Shown here in pieces: positions 13,864 through 61,899 of a stretch of DNA of 64,000 nt. The stretch covers positions 62,001 to 126,000 of the forward strand of contig DF237028.1 of the NCBI GenBank assembly GCA_000708835.1, read 5' to 3'. The stretch's first letter is position 1. Every line of letters begins with the position of its first letter. Made by a program: the position numbers and the translations under genes. The notes under the pieces were generated by a model that did not search any database, was not told where the DNA came from, and was given only the letters and a program-made list of their open reading frames with translations. Source of the DNA: Klebsormidium nitens (Eukaryota > Plantae > Klebsormidiophyceae).

Positions 13864-16800
13864 ATGCGGAGGCCTTCAAGATTCACTCATGGGAGCCGGC
13901 AATCCAGATCGGTCCAGCTCTGCCGAGTCACCACGCTGGTCGTTGGCTTGCTCGTTTGCGGCATCTATGCCCGGTTTTTGTGGCCTTCTTCCACTGAAAG
14001 GTAAGGTAGTCCAATCCTGAACATGAGCTGACCTTTAAGATAGAGTCAACCATGGTCTGAGGAGGTTTTGTGTTGGATACATAGGCGAAGACTTTCCGTA
14101 CATGAGGCATCAGAAAGGTGCCGTGAACAAACTCGGCGTGGTTCACTGCCCCCGCAATCTGGGCAAGTTCTGCACTTTTCAGAGCCAAGTGGTAGTCTAA
14201 GCCTTTGTCTTGCTGTTCAGGGAGGATGCTGACCACGACATCCGGACAGAAATGACTGAGAGCAACGTCTCAGCCGAGAAGATCCAGAGTAGGTCTACAT
14301 TGCCCTATCTGACTCCCCTGTTCTGGAGAGAGTCGGTCTGCGGTCAAGCTGCTGTCCACCTTCACTCTTAATGCGCCCACGGTCTTCTCAAGTCTGAGCT
14401 GATTGGATCACCCGCTTGAGGCTTGCACAGTCCTGGCAAAGCGCACTAATGCAGGTTTTAAGTGGGGTGAGGTGCTCGGCAGGACAGATGCAATGATGTG
14501 TGGTTCTTGACAGCGTGTCATTGCAAAGGTGATGGCTTGGTTGACAACCTGCAGAAAAAGTTTTTCTTTCCCCCTTCCCAGCGCCCCAGCAGAAGCTGTG
14601 GTTGACGATTGGGATTCCCACGGTGCCGCGGCGTAATGACATTGACTACCTAATGACGTGAGTCAATCAAATCTACGTCTCTTCCAGCCTCCATTTGTTG
14701 CCTGTTTCATTCGCGGTCCCGGCGCACCCTTTCGCAGCGATCTAGTCCTGCAAGATTGGTTCGGGGGCCTTCAGGTATTGTTCGTCTTCTGTGCAGCACG
14801 GTGGAAGCCTTGCTGCAGGAGCTTCCTTCAACATTGGACGCCCCGCTGTATGCCAAGGTGACCCCGCACAGCGCTCCCATCCTGAGTGGCCTTGTCTTGC
14901 TATGCCGGGGTGCTGGCCACGGCCGCAATTGAGGAATTTTTGGACACTGCACGAAATCTTTTCACTACGTTGCGTCCGAACTTGGTCGGGGTGGCTGTTC
15001 TCTGCTTAGTGGCCAGTCCGAGACTGTTCTTATTCTGAGAATCCGCAGTGATGGTCGTCAGACAAATGATCAGGCCAGATTTTCCGCAGTACCCGTGGAT
15101 CACGGAATCCTTTCACAACTGATTTTAGCTCGCTCCTTTTTGCAGGTTCGAGTGATTGTTATGAACAACAAGAAGGGCAAGCACGTTGTGTTCGAAAGAG
15201 CCAAGACGCGGTACCAGAACGCGGGCACTGATGTGCTCCTTTCCCGTGCCATTGCGGCATCCCACATTGAGTTCGTCGACAACCCGGGAGACTTCGTAGA
15301 TCCGTGAGCAGCTGGCCAGCCTTATCAGGTTTTCTCTTTGGGAGCACTTGCGGCAGATTCTAGTGCAAGGAGGAGGACCGCTCTCTACTCGCAGTTTGAC
15401 GTTCCCCCCGACCAGTCGTTCCGGGTCGTCAATGAGGAATGCACAGGATCAAGTTTTGTTCATGAACTCCTGGAGCGAGACTCCATCGCGATGTAGAAAG
15501 TCGAAGTCGGCCGCGCTCAAGCCTATGCTCTAAACTCGCCAGTGCACCTCCGAACTAAATCATTGTCGAACTTCAGTCACAGCTTGTGCCGTTTTGAAGC
15601 TCGAATTCCATTGCTCCATTCCCCACTGTTTAAACGGGTAAAACTTGAAGGTGTGGATGTGCATCTCGTTTCGAACTCACGACGCTCCGGTTTTGCAGCT
15701 TCAAGGGAAAGATCGAAGAGCCAGACGACCTCAACAACCCGTCCTCCCGGCCTGGCAGGTGAAACAACCAGATAATCTTTCTGACACATTTTTTTTCCCT
15801 TTTTGGGGATGTTCAGATGCTCGCAAAAAGTCCCTGCGAAGTTGCACAGGTGTGCATCCATATTCAGGACTGAGACGGAGTTGCAGACATGCTTGCAACC
15901 CACCAGGACCAAATGCGATTTCAGTCTTCGACCCCCGTGAATTTTGAGTCGACTGGTTGCTCGGCATTGCTTTCCAATCGAAGCTTCTGACACCTGGAGT
16001 TTCGTTGAAGTTGCGAACCCGGACCTGTCTTCATTGCGCAGTGCGGTGCGGCAGCAGACATGCGACCTGATCACGCTTATGGAGGAGGCGCTTCGGAGAC
16101 CCTCCGACTATTACATGTTTATGGAGGTGAGGGACGACGGGCTCTATGATGGAACGTTTAGAAAACTAAACGGGATGGATGGGAGGTATGTTTTCGGAGA
16201 CCCTCCGACTATTACATGTTTATGGAGGTGAGGGACGACGGGCTCTATTATAGAACGTTTAGAAAACTAAACGGGATGGATGGGAGGTATNNNNNNNNNN
16301 NNNNNNNNNNNNNNNNNNNNNNNNNNNNNNNNNNNNNNNNNNNNNNNNNNNNNNNNNNNNNNNNNNNNNNNNNNNNNNNNNNNNNNNNNNNNNNNNNNNN
16401 NNNNNNNNNNNNNNNNNNNNNNNNNNNNNNNNNNNNNNNNNNNNNNNNNNNNNNNNNNNNNNNNNNNNNNNNNNNNNNNNNNNNNNNNNNNNNNNNNNNN
16501 NNNNNNNNNNNNNNNNNNNNNNNNNNNNNNNNNNNNNNNNNNNNNNNNNNNNNNNNNNNNNNNNNNNNNNNNNNNNNNNNNNNNNNNNNNNNNNNNNNNN
16601 NNNNNNNNNNNNNNNNNNNNNNNNNNNNNNNNNNNNNNNNNNNNNNNNNNNNNNNNNNNNNGTTTCTGCCAGCCGTTTGCAAGGTCACTTTGTGGCGAAC
16701 TAACTCTTCGTGACCAGATTGGTGGCCCGCAATGGTGGATTTGAAAGCCGACAGGACCGGGGGCTTTTCGATTGCTTGGATGAGTCTGGGGGCGTTATTC

Positions 16801-30941: not shown

Positions 30942-31932
30942 TGGTCCACTGCCTTGGCAGACCAGACTCACTAATGTCCTGGTTGTTTTGGCGTTCTATT
31001 ACATGCTCGACCTGCGATGGTCCGAGAATCCGAATGATCACGGATGAAAAGCTTCGGGAGTTTACAAGAAGGTTCAACGTGATCACAAGCAGCGCGGACG
31101 TATATCTGAGTACTTGGCTAGGTCAAATCCGAATGATATGGAACTTGAAGCGCAACCCAACTGGCATTTCACCACGTTAGATTGGTGATTTAACACTGGG
31201 CTGAAAAACTTTCGTCGTCTTTCAACGCGGTGGAACTCGACGATCTGAGCTTGTTTAAGGAGCAGCAAGTCAGCCTTTGCAATTCCATGCCCCATCGCGG
31301 TCCTTGAAAGACCTGGCGCAGCTCTGTCATGGCGTTGTAAAGAGGATGTAGTAGTGCTGGCAGATCAATAACTTGAGGCAGGGTCGCTGAGAAAAGCAGG
31401 GTATGCACATCACCCGCCAGTGACTAAGTTGATATCCCATTTATGAAAGCCCTGAATGAGATGATACGCATGCCCCCATGTTCCGGTGTTGCAAATGAGC
31501 GGCCCTCCCTAGCTGGGGCCTGCATGCGCATCAGACGTCCATGTGGGCCACATGGACGGTAAGTACCTTGTAAATTAACTCATTGGGTCCCGGTACGTAC
31601 CGCTTCGCACAGCATCTGGATGACTTCTGCATGGCAGGAAACAAGAAGGAACCTTGGAAGAAGGACTTGCCACAGGTGACAAAATCCTTAGTTGTTGACA
31701 GTGAGTGGCGCTTCAAGGTGCCGGCGGTCCTGCCGGCGCGCAAGTAAACTTCGTGCACTTTGGAAGTTATTAGTCATTTGAGTTCCTGCAATCTGGATAA
31801 TGCTGGCCGGCTCCATCGACCTGGGCGCACGCTTTGCGAGATCCCTTGCGAGTGGTGGTGGTTTCCGCTGGGTCAATGTCTTGAGAGCACCTACTGTGCA
31901 GAGGCACGAGGCGGGTCCCTGTACCTCGTTCG

Positions 31933-32253
31933 ATGGCCACCCCGCAACTGGTGCAGCAAACCCCCAGCCCCTCCTCCGCGTCTGCCCCAAGCTCTAGCGA
32001 GCAACTGGAACGGCTCTGTCGTCGCTGCAACAAGTACTTCAGCCCTGCTCGCAATTCTCCCCAGTCCTGTCGCTTCCACAGGAAAGAGTTTGTGTGCCGC
32101 TGGCACGACGACCAGCGCCGGTACTATGAGCTGGGGCCGGACGAGCCGCCCTATGCCGCCAAGTTCTACGACTGCTGCAATGCTGAGGACATCAACGCGC
32201 CTGGATGCGCCACCAGCAAGCACATCACTTACGACGATCTAGAGGAAGACTAG
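31933..32253 (+). CDS. Small (106 aa) intronless Cys/His zinc-finger-like protein
   Basis: Clean ATG-TAG ORF with GC3-biased codons. Pattern CRRC...CRFH...YDCC...GC...H; the block FVCRWHDDQRRYYELGPDEPPYAAKFYDCC resembles an uncharacterised conserved plant protein as I recall it. Confidence 0.8.
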   Translation: MATPQLVQQTPSPSSASAPSSSEQLERLCRRCNKYFSPARNSPQSCRFHRKEFVCRWHDDQRRYYELGPDEPPYAAKFYDCCNAEDINAPGCATSKHITYDDLEED

Positions 32254-32330
32254 CTGAAAGAAAGGACGCCGGTTTTTCTCCGTTGTGAAAAAAGCCTCTA
32301 GGTGGGGCGGCCCTGACACGTAGTAGCCCA

Positions 32331-35300
32331 ATGGCCGTTCTATGCGAGACCAACCAGATGTCGCTTGCTCTAGAGAGGCGCATCTTTGCGTCTTCCCCCG
32401 CTGGGCGAGCTATCCCCTGCACGCTGGTCACAGGCTTTCTCGGCTCTGGCAAGACCACCCTCGTCCGGCACATCCTGGCCAGCAAGGGCGACCTCCGCAT
32501 TGCAGTGCTTGTCAACGAGTTTGGCCAAGCCGACATTGACGGCGCCCTTTTAAACACCACCCAAACGAGCGCCTCGCTGGGCATTGCCCCTCCCCGTGCC
32601 CTCTCCCACGGCTGCGCTTGCTGCGACACTAGCGAGGAGTTCCGGGCCGCTGTACGAGGCATGCTAGAGAGCCAGGACGGCTTTGATTACTTGGTGGTCG
32701 AGACCTCGGGGCTGTCGGACCCTCAGCCGATGGCGCACGCGTTAATGGAGCTGGGAGTGCGGCTCGACATGGTTGTGGCGGTAGTGGATGCGGAAGCGCT
32801 GTGTGGCATGCTGGAGAACGAGGTGGCCAGGCGCCAGCTGGCGGCGGCGGACCTGGTGCTCGTCAACAAGTGAGGCTGCAAGACTCTCCAGGGAGGGACG
32901 CTCGATTGTGGTATGTTACCTGCTGGGGAAAGCTGCATTGGTTTGAGTAGACTTTACAAGAAGCGTGAGATTTTTCCACTCTTGCCCAATCCTTTATAGG
33001 AGCTGCCAATGTGCAATTTCAAGGCAGCCATTCGGGTAGGCATTGTACTCGGAAATTTGCTGAAGTGATTGTTGTGAACTTGTCTGAAAGAGCTTTGAAG
33101 GGGCTCAGAATTTTTTCTACCTCTGCCAGAAAGTCCCTCATGGGAAGCTCACAAGAATTGTGGCAACTCCCTTGTCTCGTTAGGGGCTTGTCTCCTAAGG
33201 TTCATAGGCCGGCGGACGGGTAGGGGCCCTACCTGGTCTGGTGGTTAGGGTGGGTAGGGGTGCGGAGCGCGTAAGATTTTTGGGTTAGGATTTTTAGTTG
33301 TGGTGCCCGGCGTTTCTAGATCTTAGGAGGCAAGCCCCTTCGGAGACAAGGGAGCTGCCAGTACCTCACCAGACTCCAGCATTGCTGCCTCTTGCCCTCA
33401 TACCCCCAGGTCTTCTCTGCAGGTGCGATCTGGTGTCTCTGGCTGGCGTCTCTGATGTCGAGGACCGCGTGGAAGCCCTGACAGGGGGAACAAAGGCTGT
33501 GCGCTGCCGCTACTCGCGGGTACCCCTGGAGCTCGTTCTCAACATCGACATTCGGCATGCCACCACTGACGTGGCGCTTGCGACCAACGGGGCAAGTGGC
33601 TACTTGTCGCATGAAAGAGTGAGGACTTCTGTGAAGCTGAAAATGAGGGAACCAGAGGGAGTGCCAGTAAGACGAAGCAAGGCTTTGGGGTTAACCAAGA
33701 TGAACGAAGGTACGAAAAGGATGGCGGGAGGGAATGACAACAATGGGCACTCCGCGCATCTGCCGGGAGGGGCTGTGAGGGATTCTAGTTCGCATCCAGG
33801 GAGTGAAAGCAACCGCCGCTTTGATGAAGCAAGGTGCTCACCAGGTTTCCAGGCGGAACGGGGTTCAAGTTCGCACGCCGGTCCATCGGGTCACGTTCAC
33901 GTGACCCAGTTTGGGTCGACGAGTGTGCATTCGGAGGTGCCCCTGTCTTTGGCTGCCTTCCAGGAGTGGGTGCTGGAGCGGCTTTTGACAGCAGGGGGAG
34001 TGCTGCGGGCCAAGGGCATCGCCTGGTTTGCAGAGGACAGGTAAGGTGCCCCTTCTCAAGACACATGCGTCTCTTATCTGTTCAATACCAGATAGCTGAT
34101 TAAGGACTGCCAGTCGTTCTCGTTTGAGCCTTCGATGCAACACGGGAAATCGACGTTGTACGCGTTTGGACTTGAAGAGCTTTGCTTTCGGCATTCATTT
34201 CAACAAGTCGTTGCCCTTCTTCGCCTACTTATGTAGAGTTCTTGTCGAGAACACCCCCAGGTCAGAGGCGCACATCTTCTGTTACAGCGGAGCAACAAAT
34301 GACTCGAGAATTGGTTTGCCTTCATCCGCATCATGATACCAGTATTTCGCAGATTGTTTTGGAGAATTGTACCCTTCGCTCCTCTTCTTTTCTGTATACG
34401 GCTTCCCTTACGACTCGCGGAGGTCAAACTCCAGCTGACGGTTTTCCCCTCTTCATCGCCAAAGGTTTTCCCCATACCTTCCCGCGCTCCTTGCAGGTCC
34501 CGCCGTTATGTCTTCCAGTACAGTGGCCGCCAGCGTCTGGATTTGCACACCGAGGGGCTCTGGGAGAGCCCGCCCCACACCAGCGTCGTTCTCATCGGCC
34601 GAGACAAGGCCGCGCTGCCAGGTACAATTCCCCAGGCTTGTATTCTAACCCGCTCAGATGATCATTCCTCGTTTCAGCAGGGTTTCGGAATGGGGACTGT
34701 TGCGCAACAGAGGGCTCCTGCGTTATTGACAGCAGCGTGTGTCTTTCTCTTCAATTGTTGTCGTGTTGCCAGAAGGAAGCGTTCGTGGGAAGCCGAGAGG
34801 GTCTAGCTTGCGACCTCTCTTCTTCCATCTAGTTGCATCTTGATCCCTTGATCTGCTTCAAGCCCGGGGCTCTGTACTTGAGAAACTGGGCACAAGACAT
34901 CGTTGGATTCAGTATAATCCTTTCGCAACTCAGTCCAGGTGCAGAAGTTTCTTCTGTTCAGAACCATTACTGACGTCGTGCTTTGGTGCAATACCAGGCC
35001 TGGAATCAACGCTCGAGGTTTGTGCGGACCGCACACTCCAACCGACAGATGAGACGCGTCCTGTGCCACCAAGTCAAGCTTTTCGAGACCTCATGGCGCG
35101 CGACGACCGTTTCAAGGTGCGCCAAACTGCGCCAACCTTGCTCGGTCTGCCTGATATGTTCTGGCAGCTTCGCAGTCTGTCTCCGTGGTAGCGTGCAATT
35201 GTAAGCTCTGGCCTACGGTGTTGTATACACGTCGTCATTAATGTAGAGGGTCCACGTAAAAGACTCCTCTGTCAGACGATTGGAGCGTATCGTACTGTGC

Positions 35301-36601
35301 GCTTAAGTCCTGCATCCCCATTCTCGACATTCATCTTTCTTATCGGATACAACCAATGCTAACAAGACGGCCGTCGAAACAACCGACACTACCGGTGTCT
35401 GGTTGCGAAACGACACAAAAGCAATCCGCGGACTCATTGACTTCCTCTTCTGTCTGACGCCCTTAGTCCAGGTTATCTTACGCACTGTTTTTTGCAGCTG
35501 GTGGCGGCGACCTCTTGCTTTGAAGCGGACACGGCGAGTTCGGCTCCTTTTCGGGATGAAGCTGACACCCTGGTGCGCTTTGTATTGAAGGGCGATGCGC
35601 TCAGAGGGGTCGACCAGGTACGGACTGAGAGCCTACTTGGATCGAACTGTGCAGTTAGCAGCTCATTCGCAGACTGTTCCAGCGAAGCCGTGCCAGGGCG
35701 GATGGGGAAGCCGCTGATCTGTGTATCTGACTGGCGCTGTTTCTCTTGACAAGTTGCTGAGGCCAGTATAGCGTCCATGAAGCCTGCCCGCGCAGATTAG
35801 CTGAGAGGAAGACGCTCGGAAACCCGCCTCTCGTTTTATTTGAGGACTCTTGTTTCCGAGCGGCTGGACGTCCTGCACCGGACTATCTTGCCCTTACCGT
35901 TGTCCTTGCCCGGACGAATCTTGTGTCTTGCTTGACAAACGTTTCATTCATGTGTAAACCAACACCGGATTGCCCGCTCGTAGTGCTGGTCATCAGCGAT
36001 CTTCAAACGAGAACTGGGCACCCCACAGCTCTCCCTGCTTATGCAGGACTTTGGTCAAAACGATCTTGCTTCTCTATCGCTATTTGACCAAAACCGATTT
36101 AGTGACTTGTATGTGCCGTGGGTGCAGAGAGCGCTGACGGAGTCGCTCATTGCGAAAGTGAACGGCCACAGGAAGCTCTTGCTGGCGGCAGTGGACATCC
36201 ATTCAGAAGGTGGGAACTCACTTTCGACGTTCCGCATTTCACTTTCATCAGCAGGAATGTCACGGAGTTTTTGTTTGTTCTCTGTAAGACATCCCGAGCT
36301 TTCATTCGATGGCTTAGCCAAATCGCTTGCCGGTGAGAGTTGCAGCCGGAAGCTTTTTCACTGCCAGTAGTGGAGTTTGTTTCGGAATGCGAGGGTGTAC
36401 AGTAATGATCTTGAAATTGTTCGAGTCGAGCACTCAGTTTATGCCGGAATTTTCGATGCAGGCTGTGTTGCACAAATGGTCCTCGGGCCTGCTGTCAATG
36501 CTGAGGATGCGTGGGCCCTGGTCGCGCAAGAAGCGGGCAAAGCACGGGCAGCGGCCTTCAAGAATATTCACGCCTGCAGGTGCGACTTCACCAGGAGCTA
36601 G
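32331..36601 (+). CDS. COG0523/CobW (ZNG1-like) G3E GTPase metallochaperone with an extra C-terminal domain, 7 exons, about 580 aa
   Basis: Exons 32331-32869, 33423-34040, 34497-34621, 34998-35116, 35498-35617, 36128-36209 and 36462-36601 sum to 1743 nt in phase. Walker A GFLGSGKT, VLVNEFG, GCACC (CxCC), VVETSGLSDP, VNKCD and CobW_C VLRAKGIAWF are present. Confidence 0.92.
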
Positions 36602-37500
36602 CAACTCTCGCCAACAGTTTACATAGAAGCTCCTTGCACGCGACTGTACATAGTCGAGACTCTGCACGCTGACTTTGCTGCTCACCTTTGCAAAGACGCT
36701 ACTTCGTAAAATCAGACTAAAAGTCCTGCGGGCCGATGCAAGACACAGTGCGACGTAGGCCCGCCGGACTTGCAGCGTGCGGCTGTTGTCCATCTATCTG
36801 ATCATGTGGCCGATGGTCTGTTCCGGCATCTGAGCTGCAATCTCAGCGCAAGAACTATAACTCGATCAATCTATCTTCAGTGCCCGGCCAGATATGTCAA
36901 TGCCGCCGCCGCCCCACATGAGCCTTCTGCGTGACATATTGTTGCATTGAACATGTCCGATCAAGTTCGATGCATCCTAATTGGTCACATGTGCGTGCGA
37001 GGTCAGCTCCTGACGTTATGGGAGGGCCGCAGTATAGTTAAGATCTCCACGTATGTCCAATCCCGTGATTCAGGCTCTGGCACACATGGCTGCAGCTAAC
37101 ATGCATGCACGCGGAACAATCAATCAGTAAAGCATGGGTATATTAGAACTTGCGCGACCTTGAATACTGTATACTGTAACGTACTGCACAATATAGGTGA
37201 ATATCAGGTACGTCGGTTCAATACTTGCCAGTTGCTCACTCATTGCTGTATCCTTTGCTTTGCAGAAGTCTGGTGAATTCTGAGGGCTAAAAGAGGCTGA
37301 AAACGGGCGTAGTAATCCGCAAATACGCAATCCTTGTCGATCGAGTCCGTCGCAAGGCCCCTGACTGCTTGTCAAGGCAACCTTGCGGCTGTTTAAAGCT
37401 GAAATGCTATGTGAGTCTCCTACGTATTCAGAATTGTATCGTATGTACAAAATCGATCTTGCGCGCGTCAGTGCCCAACAATATGAATCAGAACCAATAG

Positions 37501-56527: not shown

Positions 56528-57222
56528 TTGCATCAAATCCAATCTCCAGTTACTGTCACTCAATGCCAGACTTATGTTGGATGCTGATTGAATGATGCTC
56601 AGTAGGTAGTCAGCTATTCCAGCCGAAGAGGTTTGTTAGCTTGCTTAGACCAGGACTGACTCTTCGTGACGCCATAGGCTGTGCGACCGTACGGCTTCAG
56701 CATACAAACTGTGTGTTTGAGAGATGCTCGATCAATACCAACTTACACGACTGGTGTGGGGTCCTACAAAATACCATTGATATCCTTTACAGTTGCTGCG
56801 GACAAGATCCTTAAGGGTGACGACGTACGGTACTTTGACAGTACACCACCTTGATTGGATGCCTGAGTCACTTGTGTCGGTCGGTGTTGACGCTCAGTGA
56901 GCTGTGTCAGGTGAGTACGCTCCGCAGCTAGATATGGCCTTGGAACGAAACATAATCATGCATGCACCTTACTGTTTTGCATGTTAGAGTTCGTTAATTA
57001 GCAACCTACTACACCTATCATGCATCCATGAGCCTGATTCTGTAACCTGCGTGAGGCGCCTCAGACCGTTTGGAACATGCATGGTAGCCAGTACGTACAG
57101 GCTATCATCCTATATGTTAGGGCAAGGCTAGCCATGCATATACTAGCTCAACTGTATAAGAGGTGTAACATGGGGAGTCGGCGCCCCAAATCCATCTTAA
57201 CATCGTGGATTTGCAGTCAATC

Positions 57223-57949
57223 NNNNNNNNNNNNNNNNNNNNNNNNNNNNNNNNNNNNNNNNNNNNNNNNNNNNNNNNNNNNNNNNNNNNNNNNNNNNNN
57301 NNNNNNNNNNNNNNNNNNNNNNNNNNNNNNNNNNNNNNNNNNNNNNNNNNNNNNNNNNNNNNNNNNNNNNNNNNNNNNNNNNNNNNNNNNNNNNNNNNNN
57401 NNNNNNNNNNNNNNNNNNNNNNNNNNNNNNNNNNNNNNNNNNNNNNNNNNNNNNNNNNNNNNNNNNNNNNNNNNNNNNNNNNNNNNNNNNNNNNNNNNNN
57501 NNNNNNNNNNNNNNNNNNNNNNNNNNNNNNNNNNNNNNNNNNNNNNNNNNNNNNNNNNNNNNNNNNNNNNNNNNNNNNNNNNNNNNNNNNNNNNNNNNNN
57601 NNNNNNNNNNNNNNNNNNNNNNNNNNNNNNNNNNNNNNNNNNNNNNNNNNNNNNNNNNNNNNNNNNNNNNNNNNNNNNNNNNNNNNNNNNNNNNNNNNNN
57701 NNNNNNNNNNNNNNNNNNNNNNNNNNNNNNNNNNNNNNNNNNNNNNNNNNNNNNNNNNNNNNNNNNNNNNNNNNNNNNNNNNNNNNNNNNNNNNNNNNNN
57801 NNNNNNNNNNNNNNNNNNNNNNNNNNNNNNNNNNNNNNNNNNNNNNNNNNNNNNNNNNNNNNNNNNNNNNNNNNNNNNNNNNNNNNNNNNNNNNNNNNNN
57901 NNNNNNNNNNNNNNNNNNNNNNNNNNNNNNNNNNNNNNNNNNNNNNNNC
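57223..57949. other. Assembly gap flanked by an identical 30-nt sequence
   Basis: N-run; CATCTTAACATCGTGGATTTGCAGTCAATC occurs at both 57193-57222 and 57950-57979. Confidence 1.
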
Positions 57950-58347
57950 CATCTTAACATCGTGGATTTGCAGTCAATCATTGATGCAAACGCGATTCCT
58001 TTTTAAATCCTTGATGCATAACACCCGCGGTGCGCTGAGCCCATGCATGCGTCATGCATGGGTGAGTCACTGTCATGTACTGTGAGTGATGCAGTCCGAC
58101 GACTAGGTTCGATGCGAGCCTGAATTGGCGCAGACAAAGAAACAAAATCATAGAAACAAAATCCATAATGGCGTCCACTTCGAAACTTGAAGTGTGCGTA
58201 TGACTTCCTTTTGTGAAATGCGAAGGCAAAGTCTTGTGAAATATGAGAGGTATTGTTAGCTCCGATAAAGAGTTGTTACAACCCGCGCTCACCTCGTAGC
58301 AATGATCGACAATTTTGCAGTGGCAGTGCAAGAATCAGTTGTGCCTA

Positions 58348-60849: not shown

Positions 60850-61899
60850 ATGGCGTTGAACGCCAGCACAAAGAAGATTCTTCGAGGTCTGCTGAGCCAA
60901 AAAAGCTCAAATCCAGCTTCTTGCTCTTCATTGATCTCCCTTATGCACAGCCAGAAGTGGTCGGGGCCTAGATCGCAGGTGGGCGCAGCAGTTGGTGACA
61001 ATTCACGAGCAGGTCGCAGCCTGCGAGAACACCACCAGTGCCGCACTCCACATTCCTTCCCTCAGGCTTTCCCAAAGGCACCTATCCGCCCGATCCAGAC
61101 ACCCTGCTGGCCAGAATTGCCAAGCCTTTTAGCTCGCAGGTTTTGTGTGGCTGCAAAAGCACATACCATGGCAAGCGGGGCAGGCGAAGGCACAGTCCCA
61201 CTGGTAGAAACTAGGGAACAGACAGCCATGAGTTCTCTGCCACCAGCAGAGTCTCTGGTTGCAGAGAAGAAAGCTTCGAGAAACGTGGTCAAAAAGGAGC
61301 TGCGCCAATTGAGCAAAGAGCAGAGGCAGGCGGAAGATGAGGCCATTCAGCGGCACGTCCTTGACATGGATTTTTTCCAAAAGGCACGTCGCGTGTGCGC
61401 CTACCTGGCGTGCGAGCCGCTGCGAGAGGTGGACACCAAGCGCATTGTTCCTGCTGCACTGAGCCAGGGAAAGGTCTTGTATGTGCCGCGGGTAGAGGAT
61501 AGGGCAGCGCATATGCGGATGTTGCGCATTGAAGATCCAGACAATGATACAGAGCGCAACAGCATGGGGATAGCAGAGCCGACGCCTTTGCTTCGTGACG
61601 GCCAGCCGCGTGAGGACGTAATGCAGGCCAAAGAAGCTCTAGATCTAATCCTAATGCCAGGCCTAGCTTTCGACCGGAGCGGCAAGCGTTTGGGAAGGGG
61701 AGGCGGTTACTATGATGTTTTCTTGCAGAGCTATGTGAATCTAGCTGAGTCAAAGGGCTGGAAGCGACCAATTTTGATTGCAATGTCGTACAAAGCTCAA
61801 ATCCGAGACTCAATTCCTGCTGACGAGACTGATCAACTGATAGATGGATTGATGACAGCTGATGGCCTCTTGACATTTGGTGATCAGATTGGAGTTTGA
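60850..61899 (+). CDS. 5-formyltetrahydrofolate cyclo-ligase, single exon, long N-terminal extension
   Basis: 349-aa uninterrupted ORF. Motifs AYLACEPLREVDT, LYVPRVED, DLILMPGLAFDRSGKRLGRGGGYYD. Confidence 0.95.
   Translation: MALNASTKKILRGLLSQKSSNPASCSSLISLMHSQKWSGPRSQVGAAVGDNSRAGRSLREHHQCRTPHSFPQAFPKAPIRPIQTPCWPELPSLLARRFCVAAKAHTMASGAGEGTVPLVETREQTAMSSLPPAESLVAEKKASRNVVKKELRQLSKEQRQAEDEAIQRHVLDMDFFQKARRVCAYLACEPLREVDTKRIVPAALSQGKVLYVPRVEDRAAHMRMLRIEDPDNDTERNSMGIAEPTPLLRDGQPREDVMQAKEALDLILMPGLAFDRSGKRLGRGGGYYDVFLQSYVNLAESKGWKRPILIAMSYKAQIRDSIPADETDQLIDGLMTADGLLTFGDQIGV

Follow-up and report, generated by a model that had tools for sequence, protein, structure and literature searches.

Two adjacent genes of the alga Klebsormidium nitens NIES-2285, one encoding a small Cys/His zinc protein and the other a COG0523/CobW-type GTPase, probably constitute a conserved dicistronic nuclear transcription unit, a reading to which we assign a probability of about two in three. 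The window analyzed was a stretch of 64,000 nucleotides of scaffold DF237028.1, and coordinates are counted from its first letter. According to this reading, transcription would start near position 31680 and yield one spliced mRNA of ~2.65 kb carrying, in order, a 106-aa CHORD-like two-zinc protein (ORF1), 77 nt, and a 580-aa COG0523/CobW-type GTPase (ORF2). Each would be a cistron of its own, with no fusion of the two by splicing or readthrough. Transcription of both proteins would be coupled, and the yield of ORF2 would be set below that of ORF1.

The locus and its RNA

ORF1 extends on the + strand from an ATG at 31933 to a TAG at 32251-32253, with an in-frame stop 5' of its ATG. ORF2 begins on the same strand with an ATG at 32331, at a frame offset of 2 and beyond a 77-nt gap (32254-32330); another candidate start of ORF2 is at 32358. 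The original prediction had described a 106-aa ORF lying 77 nt ahead of a CobW ATG at 32331, on the same strand and in another frame, and all of its coordinates were reproduced; its end coordinate, 32869, was found to be the exact end of CobW exon 1, with a GT donor at 32870. Its statement that the other gaps exceed 500 nt was checked for the immediate neighbors and holds for them, as in the public annotation the PfkB gene ends ~690 nt upstream of the annotated start of the zinc-finger (ZnF) gene and the EamA gene follows ~900 nt after the CobW stop. The same annotation treats ORF1 and CobW as two separate gene models, both of which the dicistron reading would correct. ORF1 corresponds to the C-terminal 106 aa of GAQ81395.1 (KFL_000790200) and is identical to P0410; the exact 106-aa product had no match in the gene index because the public model is a 154-aa version. 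A chlorophyte origin of the window was rejected, given this identity with a K. nitens locus on DF237028.1 and an MTHFS gene at 60850-61896 whose named matches, among the top 120 listed, all came from streptophytes. The features of the proposed unit are as follows.

31680..31932, + strand: 5' leader of the putative shared transcript, from the RNA contig starts, with two upstream AUGs (31800 and 31876)
31800..31997, + strand: 65-codon upstream ORF, out of frame and overlapping the ORF1 start; not conserved in the related locus L001
31933..32253, + strand: ORF1, predicted CHORD-like Cys/His zinc protein, 106 aa (from orthologues, ligands, AF2/Foldseek, and dN/dS)
32254..32330, + strand: inter-ORF spacer, 77 nt, AUG-free; length kept in relatives, sequence not
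32331..32869, + strand: ORF2 exon 1, COG0523/CobW G domain (from Pfam cobW) containing the motifs Walker A (GFLGSGKT) and CxCC (GCACC); splice join 32869 to 33423
33423..34040, + strand: ORF2 exon 2, completes NKCD, contains a Ser/His-containing linker, and starts CobW_C (from RNA joints, translation, and Pfam)
34497..34621, + strand: ORF2 exon 3, remainder of CobW_C (from RNA joints and translation)
34998..35116, + strand: ORF2 exon 4, first part of the C-terminal extension, without Pfam match (from RNA joints and translation)
35498..35617, + strand: ORF2 exon 5 (from RNA joints and translation)
36128..36209, + strand: ORF2 exon 6 (from RNA joints and translation)
36462..36862, + strand: ORF2 exon 7, coding sequence as far as the stop codon (36599-36601), followed by 3' UTR; RNA contigs terminate at 36839-36867

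RNA evidence was taken from short-read assemblies of four public runs (X1, X4, X9, and X11) from four independent studies. Single contigs of X11 (2644 nt) and X9 (2632 nt) comprised ORF1, the gap, CobW exon 1, and six GT..AG joints and extended to ~36860; X1 and X4 gave shorter contigs that also ran across ORF1, the gap, and exon 1. The contigs started at 31680 (X9), 31691 (X1 and X11), and 31744 (X4), and RNA depth was zero in the bin 31450-31649 in 4/4 runs. All six CobW introns were spliced out, and from ~31680 to the end of exon 1, ORF1 and the gap included, the RNA was colinear. The four runs exhibited no splice joint or contig break between 31691 and 32869, which rules out fusion of the ORFs by splicing into one protein, an outcome that the original prediction had named as one that would refute it. 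Its central claim, that both proteins may come from one mRNA, is supported by these spliced contigs covering both ORFs in four studies and by the tight pairing kept in relatives, as described below.

A contig across two genes is no proof of one transcript, and low-depth unspliced contigs were present in the same runs. Two separate, non-overlapping transcripts might in principle have been merged by the de Bruijn assembler or through contamination with genomic DNA or pre-mRNA. This explanation is barely credible, however, as the spanning contigs were spliced and of high depth (54-264x, compared to 3-13x for the unspliced material), the path was identical in four studies, and a continuous 31-mer path is impossible from transcripts that do not overlap.

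Overlapping transcripts are a stronger alternative, which we regard as possible though rather unlikely. Short-read contigs do not show molecule ends, and the identical contig would result if a CobW transcript started inside ORF1 or the gap and a ZnF transcript had its poly(A) site beyond that start. In such nested units the long RNA would exist, most CobW would be made from a shorter monocistronic mRNA driven by a promoter located within ORF1 or the spacer, and the ZnF gene would have no terminator of its own or a terminator inside CobW. The two separate genes of the public annotation agree with this arrangement. In X1 the depth was 264 for the exon-1 contig and ~350 for the later exons, a ratio of ~75% that, being one figure per contig and a weak measure, leaves room for a shorter CobW-only RNA. 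In X4, however, the equally weak per-contig depths were equal, at 162.9 (contig with ORF1 and exons 1-2) versus 163.8 (exons 3-5). A Trinity contig of K. subtile containing the ZnF ORF also fits nested units: the 106-aa ORF is its longest ('.p1'), so most of CobW is missing from it, and it could represent either a fragment or a monocistronic RNA. On the other hand, no break or branch was observed between the ORFs in four runs, though unspliced intron contigs of only ~6x coincide with exon-end breaks in X1.

The two encoded proteins

Orthologues of ORF1, ~95 aa in length and with 61-85% identity, were found across streptophytes, and the family (387 representatives) is widespread in land plants as stand-alone genes. 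Among 32 diverse members, C29, C32, C46, H49, C81, C82, and C92 were invariant and H97 nearly invariant, matching the eight Cys/His ligands for two zinc ions that define a CHORD domain. The dN/dS ratio relative to L001 was 0.105 over the whole ORF. Judged from these comparisons, ORF1 is a genuine gene on which purifying selection acts.

The Pfam CHORD model (PF04968) did not match ORF1, for which the only Pfam signal was a BTK motif that, with 19.8 bits, stayed below its cut-off of 24. When an ORF1 profile was compared with the PDB, the best match was a CHORD domain (2yrt, E value of 0.0028; 2xcm, E value of 0.011). The AF2 model had a mean pLDDT of 77.7, with a core above 90, and its top two Foldseek matches, 2yrt and 2xcm_E, were both CHORD domains (probability of 1.00 and TM of 0.57-0.61 on the target, with weak E values of 5e-3 and 1e-2). 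The predicted fold of ORF1 is thus closest to the CHORD domains, which are known from the HSP90 co-chaperones RAR1 and CHORDC1 (PDB 2xcm and 2yrt). The likeness lies in the eight ligands and in the CC...GC...H second half. Unlike RAR1 and CHORDC1, ORF1 is a single domain of ~75 residues, with neither a second CHORD nor a CS domain.

Since ORF1 belongs to a conserved protein family that stands alone in land plants, dicistron is the more apt term for the locus than the "long uORF" that the original prediction had offered beside it; two separate, close, same-strand ORFs for conserved proteins are present. It is highly unlikely that ORF1 is mainly a regulatory uORF that slows CobW translation or makes it respond to Zn, with the ORF1 protein secondary. 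ORF1 does occupy a uORF-like position, with its stop far ahead of six introns; because six exon junctions follow that stop, coupling to NMD would be possible, and the Arabidopsis CDC26-TTM3 bicistron is cited as NMD-sensitive (PMC11892635). Set against such a role are the stand-alone land-plant family, the eight conserved ligands, and the confident CHORD-like core, and a dN/dS of 0.105 along the entire ORF indicates that selection acts on the protein.

ORF2 consists of 7 exons and encodes a 580-aa COG0523 GTPase. The two domains, GTPase motifs, and CxCC motif that characterize COG0523/CobW G3E GTPases were all found: Pfam returned cobW (PF02492, E value of 1.6e-40) and CobW_C (PF07683, 24.6 bits against a cut-off of 22), and GFLGSGKT, GCACC, ETSG, and NKCD (the last across the exon 1/2 junction) appeared with the invariants in alignment A4. 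The dN/dS ratio relative to L001 was 0.094, indicating purifying selection. The C-terminal extension, searched exon by exon as short pieces, gave no Pfam match.

The nearest relatives of ORF2 were CobW proteins of Closterium, Cinnamomum, prasinophytes, and cyanobacteria (45-51% identity), and by its distribution among taxa ORF2 fits "cluster 4" of an earlier survey, a patchy streptophyte group (PMC10642216). About 28 residues precede the P-loop, and a short N-terminal motif that is conserved in Klebsormidium, Closterium, and Cinnamomum differs from that of ZNG1. With exon 1 alone as the query, the NCBIfam CobW, YjiA-like, and ZigA models all scored far below their cut-offs. ORF2 is probably not ZNG1, being set apart by its relatives, taxon pattern, and N-terminus rather than by direct comparison with ZNG1. 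The ZNG1 parallel drawn beforehand does not seem to suit this protein, with the taxon pattern fitting "cluster 4" and the best matches lying elsewhere.

Linkage in relatives and access to the second ORF

ORF1 was located directly ahead of CobW exon 1, on the same strand and at 57-78 nt, in the loci L001, L002, L045, and L046, among which two further Klebsormidium-like lineages with saturated synonymous sites keep the pair. The spacer measured 77 nt in the window, 78 nt in L001, and 57 nt in both L002 and L045. Synonymous sites were saturated relative to L002, and the upstream neighbor genes of the window differed from those of L002 and L045. In the same comparisons intron 1 varied from ~330 to 660 nt, and noncoding sequence was only ~50% identical. 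Because spacings of 78, 57, and 57 nt were kept while intron 1 varied and noncoding sequence diverged, the short distance is more than chance. A spacer this short, conserved in length but not in sequence, also leaves little room for the internal promoter of nested units. Synteny, suggested beforehand as a check, was thus upheld in Klebsormidium-like loci and failed in Riccia, Closterium, and two plant-like contigs. In the Riccia and Closterium loci no CobW gene lay within 10 kb of a zinc-protein gene, and outside Klebsormidium-like algae CobW was near the zinc protein in 0/42 metagenome loci, mostly plant-like (L003 and L005 were inspected further). "Rosetta stone" fusions of the zinc domain with CobW were absent from the ten longer family members scanned.

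The spacer had an identity to L001 of only 55% and was free of AUG in three of the four loci. A comparison of the spacer with Rfam gave nothing at an E value of 1 or below, its predicted fold was unremarkable (z of -1.09), and no sequence block was conserved in it between the deeper lineages; an IRES-like RNA element or a strong spacer structure was thus not supported. Stop-codon readthrough or frameshift fusion was ruled out, since the frame offset between ORF1 and ORF2 is 2 in the window and 0 in L001 and L002 and further in-frame stops occur within the spacer.

The start context of ORF1 was TCG ATG G in the window, L001, L002, and L045. By its T at -3 this context counts as weak, and some scanning ribosomes would be expected to go past it. 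ORF1 itself contained 4-11 extra AUGs per locus (32126-32205 in the window), several with a purine at -3, and the ORFs opened by them all stopped before the ORF2 AUG (4/4, 4/4, 11/11, and 10/10 in the four loci). Observed/expected AUG ratios inside ORF1 were 1.32 (window), 1.07 (L001), 2.21 (L002), and 1.85 (L045), and the ratio for the whole region ahead of ORF2 was 0.88, so that AUG depletion upstream of ORF2 was not found. Internal AUGs in this number and context should strongly cut scanning to ORF2, which favors nested units. For a dicistronic mRNA, the weak ORF1 start and the ending of every internal ORF before the ORF2 AUG suggest that ribosomes would most likely arrive at ORF2 partly by leaky scanning and partly by reinitiation following the internal short ORFs or ORF1.

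Possible function and known dicistronic systems

The COG0523 Zn chaperone ZNG1 docks on the zinc finger of its client METAP1 (PMC10642216). The Klebsormidium pair resembles this system in having a COG0523 GTPase with CxCC and an N-terminal motif ahead of the G domain, here encoded downstream, and a Cys/His zinc protein, here encoded upstream; it differs in that the zinc protein is CHORD-like whereas METAP1 has a zf-C6H2 domain. By analogy, the CHORD-like protein might be a dedicated client or client-adaptor of the "cluster 4" GTPase, with the N-terminal motif of the GTPase docking on the zinc domain as ZNG1 does on METAP1 and, in Klebsormidiophyceae, the dicistron serving to set their stoichiometry. 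We consider this unlikely. The one-mRNA part of the original interpretation was supported, but the client, adaptor, or sensor role proposed with it found no support, given the lack of fusions among the members scanned, the unlinked genes elsewhere, and a CobW protein that does not look ZNG1-like and is patchy in streptophytes, in contrast to a zinc protein common in land plants. If true, the client reading would provide the first client for a plant COG0523 family outside ZNG1 and would explain in functional terms why a eukaryote has an operon-like pair. A CHORD-like protein that stands alone and a COG0523 GTPase other than ZNG1 are both poorly understood, and the pairing of these metal-related proteins offers a cheap functional hypothesis.

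To our knowledge, two-protein nuclear mRNAs are documented at large scale mainly in chlorophytes, and the plant lineage proper has provided few cases, such as CDC26-TTM3. If the dicistron reading is true, the branch of the green lineage that includes land plants makes use of two-protein mRNAs as well, Klebsormidium being an early-branching streptophyte alga. No mention of this locus or of Klebsormidium nuclear polycistrons was found in a literature search. Two studies (PMC11892635 and PMC9768141) cite CDC26-TTM3 as a bicistronic mRNA shared by land plants and green algae. It is similar to the Klebsormidium locus in its streptophyte host, in its small upstream ORF and larger downstream enzyme ORF, and in an upstream stop ahead of introns, on which NMD may act; it differs in its proteins and in being conserved across plants, whereas the present pair is linked only in Klebsormidium-like algae.

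Nuclear loci of this dicistronic type are an established feature of chlorophytes (Gallaher et al. 2021, PMC7896298; Duenas et al. 2025, PMC11892635). The main texts of both papers do not mention a CobW or zinc pair, and the supplements of PMC11892635 that were examined contain no CobW/COG0523 term. The Klebsormidium locus shares with the chlorophyte polycistrons two conserved, non-overlapping, same-strand ORFs, a small ORF1 (321 nt), a short gap, spliced RNA contigs over both ORFs, a weak ORF1 start, and conservation in relatives. Unlike those loci, it belongs to a streptophyte (Klebsormidiophyceae) and is known from short-read contigs and sequence. Its spacer of 57-78 nt compares with chlorophyte medians of 212-260 nt. 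The chlorophyte bicistrons with demonstrated leaky scanning are AUG-depleted (PMC11892635), with median observed/expected AUG ratios of 0.71 and 0 for chlorophyte ORF1s, whereas the Klebsormidium ORF1 has ratios of 1.07-2.2. An ORF1 that is not AUG-depleted would provide a test case for reinitiation versus pure leaky scanning across a long first cistron.

Arrangement and annotation of the two genes

The original prediction placed a 106-aa Cys/His ORF (ORF1, encoding the zinc protein ZnF) 77 nt ahead of the ATG of a CobW gene (ORF2, encoding a COG0523 GTPase) in a different frame, and its coordinates were exactly right.

Features of the ZnF-CobW pair (window positions)
31933-32253, + strand: ORF1, ATG 31933 to TAG 32251-32253, 106 aa, with an in-frame stop 5' of the ATG
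32331, + strand: ATG of ORF2, 77 nt past the ORF1 stop in another frame; Pfam cobW E value of 1.6e-40
32869/33423, 34040/34497, 34621/34998, + strand: CobW splice joints 1 to 3, from RNA contigs
35116/35498, 35617/36128, 36209/36462, + strand: CobW splice joints 4 to 6, from RNA contigs

Position 32869, where the original prediction ended, is the final base of CobW exon 1. The public annotation already carries ZnF and CobW as two distinct models, in the order PfkB gene, ZnF, 104 nt, 571-aa cobW/CobW_C gene and EamA gene, as in the window. The C-terminal 106 residues of the Klebsormidium nitens ZnF model (GAQ81395.1, KFL_000790200, 154 aa) are identical to ORF1; the protein shares a 90% cluster with the closest ZnF match, and its locus is on scaffold DF237028.1 of GCA_000708835.1 (window position = L049 position + 23630). 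This model gains 48 extra N-terminal residues from an ATG at 31631 and a predicted intron at ~31745-31901. Since the RNA contigs of four runs begin at 31680-31744, 3' of that ATG, and are colinear across the supposed intron, and since orthologues are ~95-120 aa, the extension is unsupported and looks like an annotation error. The public CobW model begins at M10, the second Met (32358), a start that would make the spacer 104 nt. Protein-level conservation, with synonymous changes, covers the nine codons from 32331 in three related algal loci (L001, L002 and L045), which makes a 580-aa form starting at 32331 rather than 32358 plausible.

Transcript and translation of the pair

High-depth contigs from the RNA runs lacked the introns at six GT..AG joints, indicating that the runs are RNA in practice. 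One continuous spliced path was found to span both ORFs. Run X11 gave a single 2644-nt contig (31691 to 36862) and run X9 a single 2632-nt contig (31680 to 36839), each passing through ORF1, the spacer, CobW exon 1 and the six joints. The same path was split over two to four contigs in runs X1 and X4, with breaks at exon ends only, those in X1 being overlapped by low-depth intron-retaining contigs. No joint or contig break was observed within 31691-32869 in the four runs, which came from four studies, and a splice fusing ORF1 and CobW into one protein, named by the original prediction as evidence against it, was thus not found. Depth at 31450-31649 was zero in all four runs, placing the transcript start near 31680.

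The suggestion that both proteins may come from one mRNA is supported by the continuous spliced path in four runs, although contigs do not show the ends of molecules and one that covers two genes is not proof of a single transcript. Mean depth in X4 was 162.9 for the contig of ORF1 plus exons 1-2 and 163.8 for that of exons 3-5; in X1 it was 264 for the exon-1 contig and ~350 downstream. The main rival, in which a nested promoter would serve CobW, we consider unlikely. In K. subtile, the 106-aa ZnF ORF (P0411) bears the label '.p1', making it the longest ORF of its Trinity contig, which must then be without most of CobW; this contig may reflect a fragmented assembly or a monocistronic form and is a caveat to the dicistron.

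ORF2 is offset from the ORF1 frame by 2 in the window but by 0 in both L001 and L002, and the spacer contains extra stops, showing that the two ORFs are independent cistrons. A T was present at -3 of the ORF1 AUG in 4/4 loci, and the spacer had no AUG in three of the four. Leaky scanning has been demonstrated in chlorophytes (PMC11892635), but K. nitens ORF1 differs from that design: synonymous shuffles revealed no AUG deficit within ORF1, the observed/expected ratio being 1.32 in the window, 1.07 in L001, 2.21 in L002 and 1.85 in L045, which counts against pure leaky scanning of the chlorophyte kind. Each internal AUG opens a short ORF of 2-49 codons that ends ahead of the ORF2 AUG, making reinitiation possible; in L002, one in-frame internal AUG re-enters ORF1. 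The K. nitens leader also holds a 65-codon uORF (31800-31997) that overlaps the ORF1 start and is not conserved in L001. The best reading is that a true dicistronic mRNA would carry ORF1 and then ORF2, with ORF2 being reached by leaky scanning plus reinitiation.

Nuclear dicistrons are already known as a kind in the green lineage (PMC7896298, PMC11892635), with CDC26-TTM3 as a plant instance. The searchable literature contained no mention of the DF237028.1 locus, a ZnF-CobW pair or Klebsormidium as a dicistron host lineage.

Unspliced contigs at 3-13x lay over CobW introns in all RNA runs (32915-33452, 34013-34523 and 35588-36154); they represent pre-mRNA or intron retention and reach ~2-5% of the depth seen for spliced RNA. 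In X1 and X4, a short GGGTTAGG/GGTAGGG-rich stretch of CobW intron 1 (33239-33269) is where contigs from other places attach, which suggests a dispersed, telomere-motif-like repeat.

Conservation of the pair

In L001, ORF1 sits immediately 5' of CobW exon 1 and shares its strand (identity of 85% for ZnF and 93% for exon 1; 78-nt spacer), as it does in L002 (68% and 76%; 57-nt spacer). L045 and L046, which are sister contigs to L002, likewise have this same-strand order with a 57-nt spacer. The window and L002 have saturated synonymous sites, spacer and intron identity is ~50-55% even against L001, and CobW intron 1 ranges from ~330 to 660 nt across the compared loci. The upstream gene is PfkB in the window, and L002 and L045 have eIF-5A and Rer1 in its place; downstream, the EamA gene is retained. 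No CobW lay closer than 10 kb to the ZnF gene in Riccia or Closterium, and none of 42 metagenome loci found by the ZnF profile had CobW; two of these, L003 and L005, have other genes after the ZnF ORF. Linkage in relatives was seen in L001, L002, L045 and L046 but not in Riccia, Closterium or the 42 loci. From these comparisons, with the pair kept within the clade and the genes unlinked outside it, the pairing is concluded to be a feature of the Klebsormidium lineage that is under selection for tight spacing.

The two proteins and their possible link

ORF1 orthologues of ~90-120 aa (61-85% identity) occur in the Klebsormidium relative L001, the metagenomic alga L002 and many land plants, and dN/dS against L001 was 0.105 (dS 0.78); ORF1 is a real, conserved protein. 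A profile search gave 387 family representatives; the closest members looked up (land plants and Closterium) are named "uncharacterized" or "CHORD domain-containing." Among 32 diverse members, ligand positions C29, C32, C46, H49, C81, C82 and C92 were invariant and the eighth, H97, nearly so. The AlphaFold2 model (mean pLDDT 77.7, core blocks >90) had as its best two PDB matches 2yrt (the CHORD domain of human CHORD-containing protein 1) and 2xcm_E (RAR1 CHORD2), with a probability of 1.00, TM of 0.57-0.61 on the target and weak E values, and the sequence profile likewise ranked 2yrt and 2xcm first. Pfam returned nothing on ORF1 but a BTK motif below threshold. We call the product a putative single-domain CHORD-like two-zinc protein rather than an established Pfam CHORD member.

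The RNA-supported joints give ORF2 seven exons and 580 codons (stop 36599-36601), with Walker A GFLGSGKT, CxCC (GCACC), ETSG, NKCD across the exon 1/2 junction, and CobW_C. The ~150-residue extension C-terminal to CobW_C (exons 4-7, 34998-36601) had no Pfam match, exon by exon; it is fully conserved in L001, and L002 and L045 show its first and last parts only. The nearest named relatives are from Closterium, Cinnamomum, Tetraselmis and Pyramimonas (49-51% identity), followed by cyanobacterial CobW proteins (~45-48%). In alignment A4, a ~12-residue motif N-terminal to the P-loop, N-Q/E-M-S-L/I-x-x-E-x-R-I/V/L (32331-32420), is present in Klebsormidium, Closterium and Cinnamomum and missing from the cyanobacterial homologues; it is possibly a partner-docking motif. 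We infer from taxon pattern that ORF2 fits "cluster 4," a small streptophyte group of nucleotide-dependent metallochaperones that is separate from both ZNG1 and ZNG2 and has a patchy presence in land plants (PMC10642216).

The tested data neither support nor exclude a physical link between the ORF1 protein and the GTPase. No ZnF-CobW fusion was found in ten longer family matches scanned, and other streptophytes (Riccia, Closterium and plant-like loci) show no linkage of the two genes. In land plants, the GTPase family appears patchy but the zinc protein is widespread, which argues mildly against an obligate partnership. Gallaher et al. (PMC7896298) report that in ~80% of polycistronic transcripts one or more of the encoded proteins has no known function, so a functional link of such a pair can rarely be judged.

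Elsewhere in the window, 60850-61899 holds an apparently single-exon gene for a 349-aa 5-formyltetrahydrofolate cyclo-ligase with a ~120-residue N-terminal extension. The named cyclo-ligase matches among the top 120 listed were from streptophytes only, including Chara, Sphagnum, Selaginella, liverworts, Closterium and many land plants, which places the window in a streptophyte and rejects a chlorophyte origin. Runs of N (assembly gaps) lie at ~16400-16750 and ~57200-57950 and account for the fall in GC that the composition profile seems to show at 56-58 kb.
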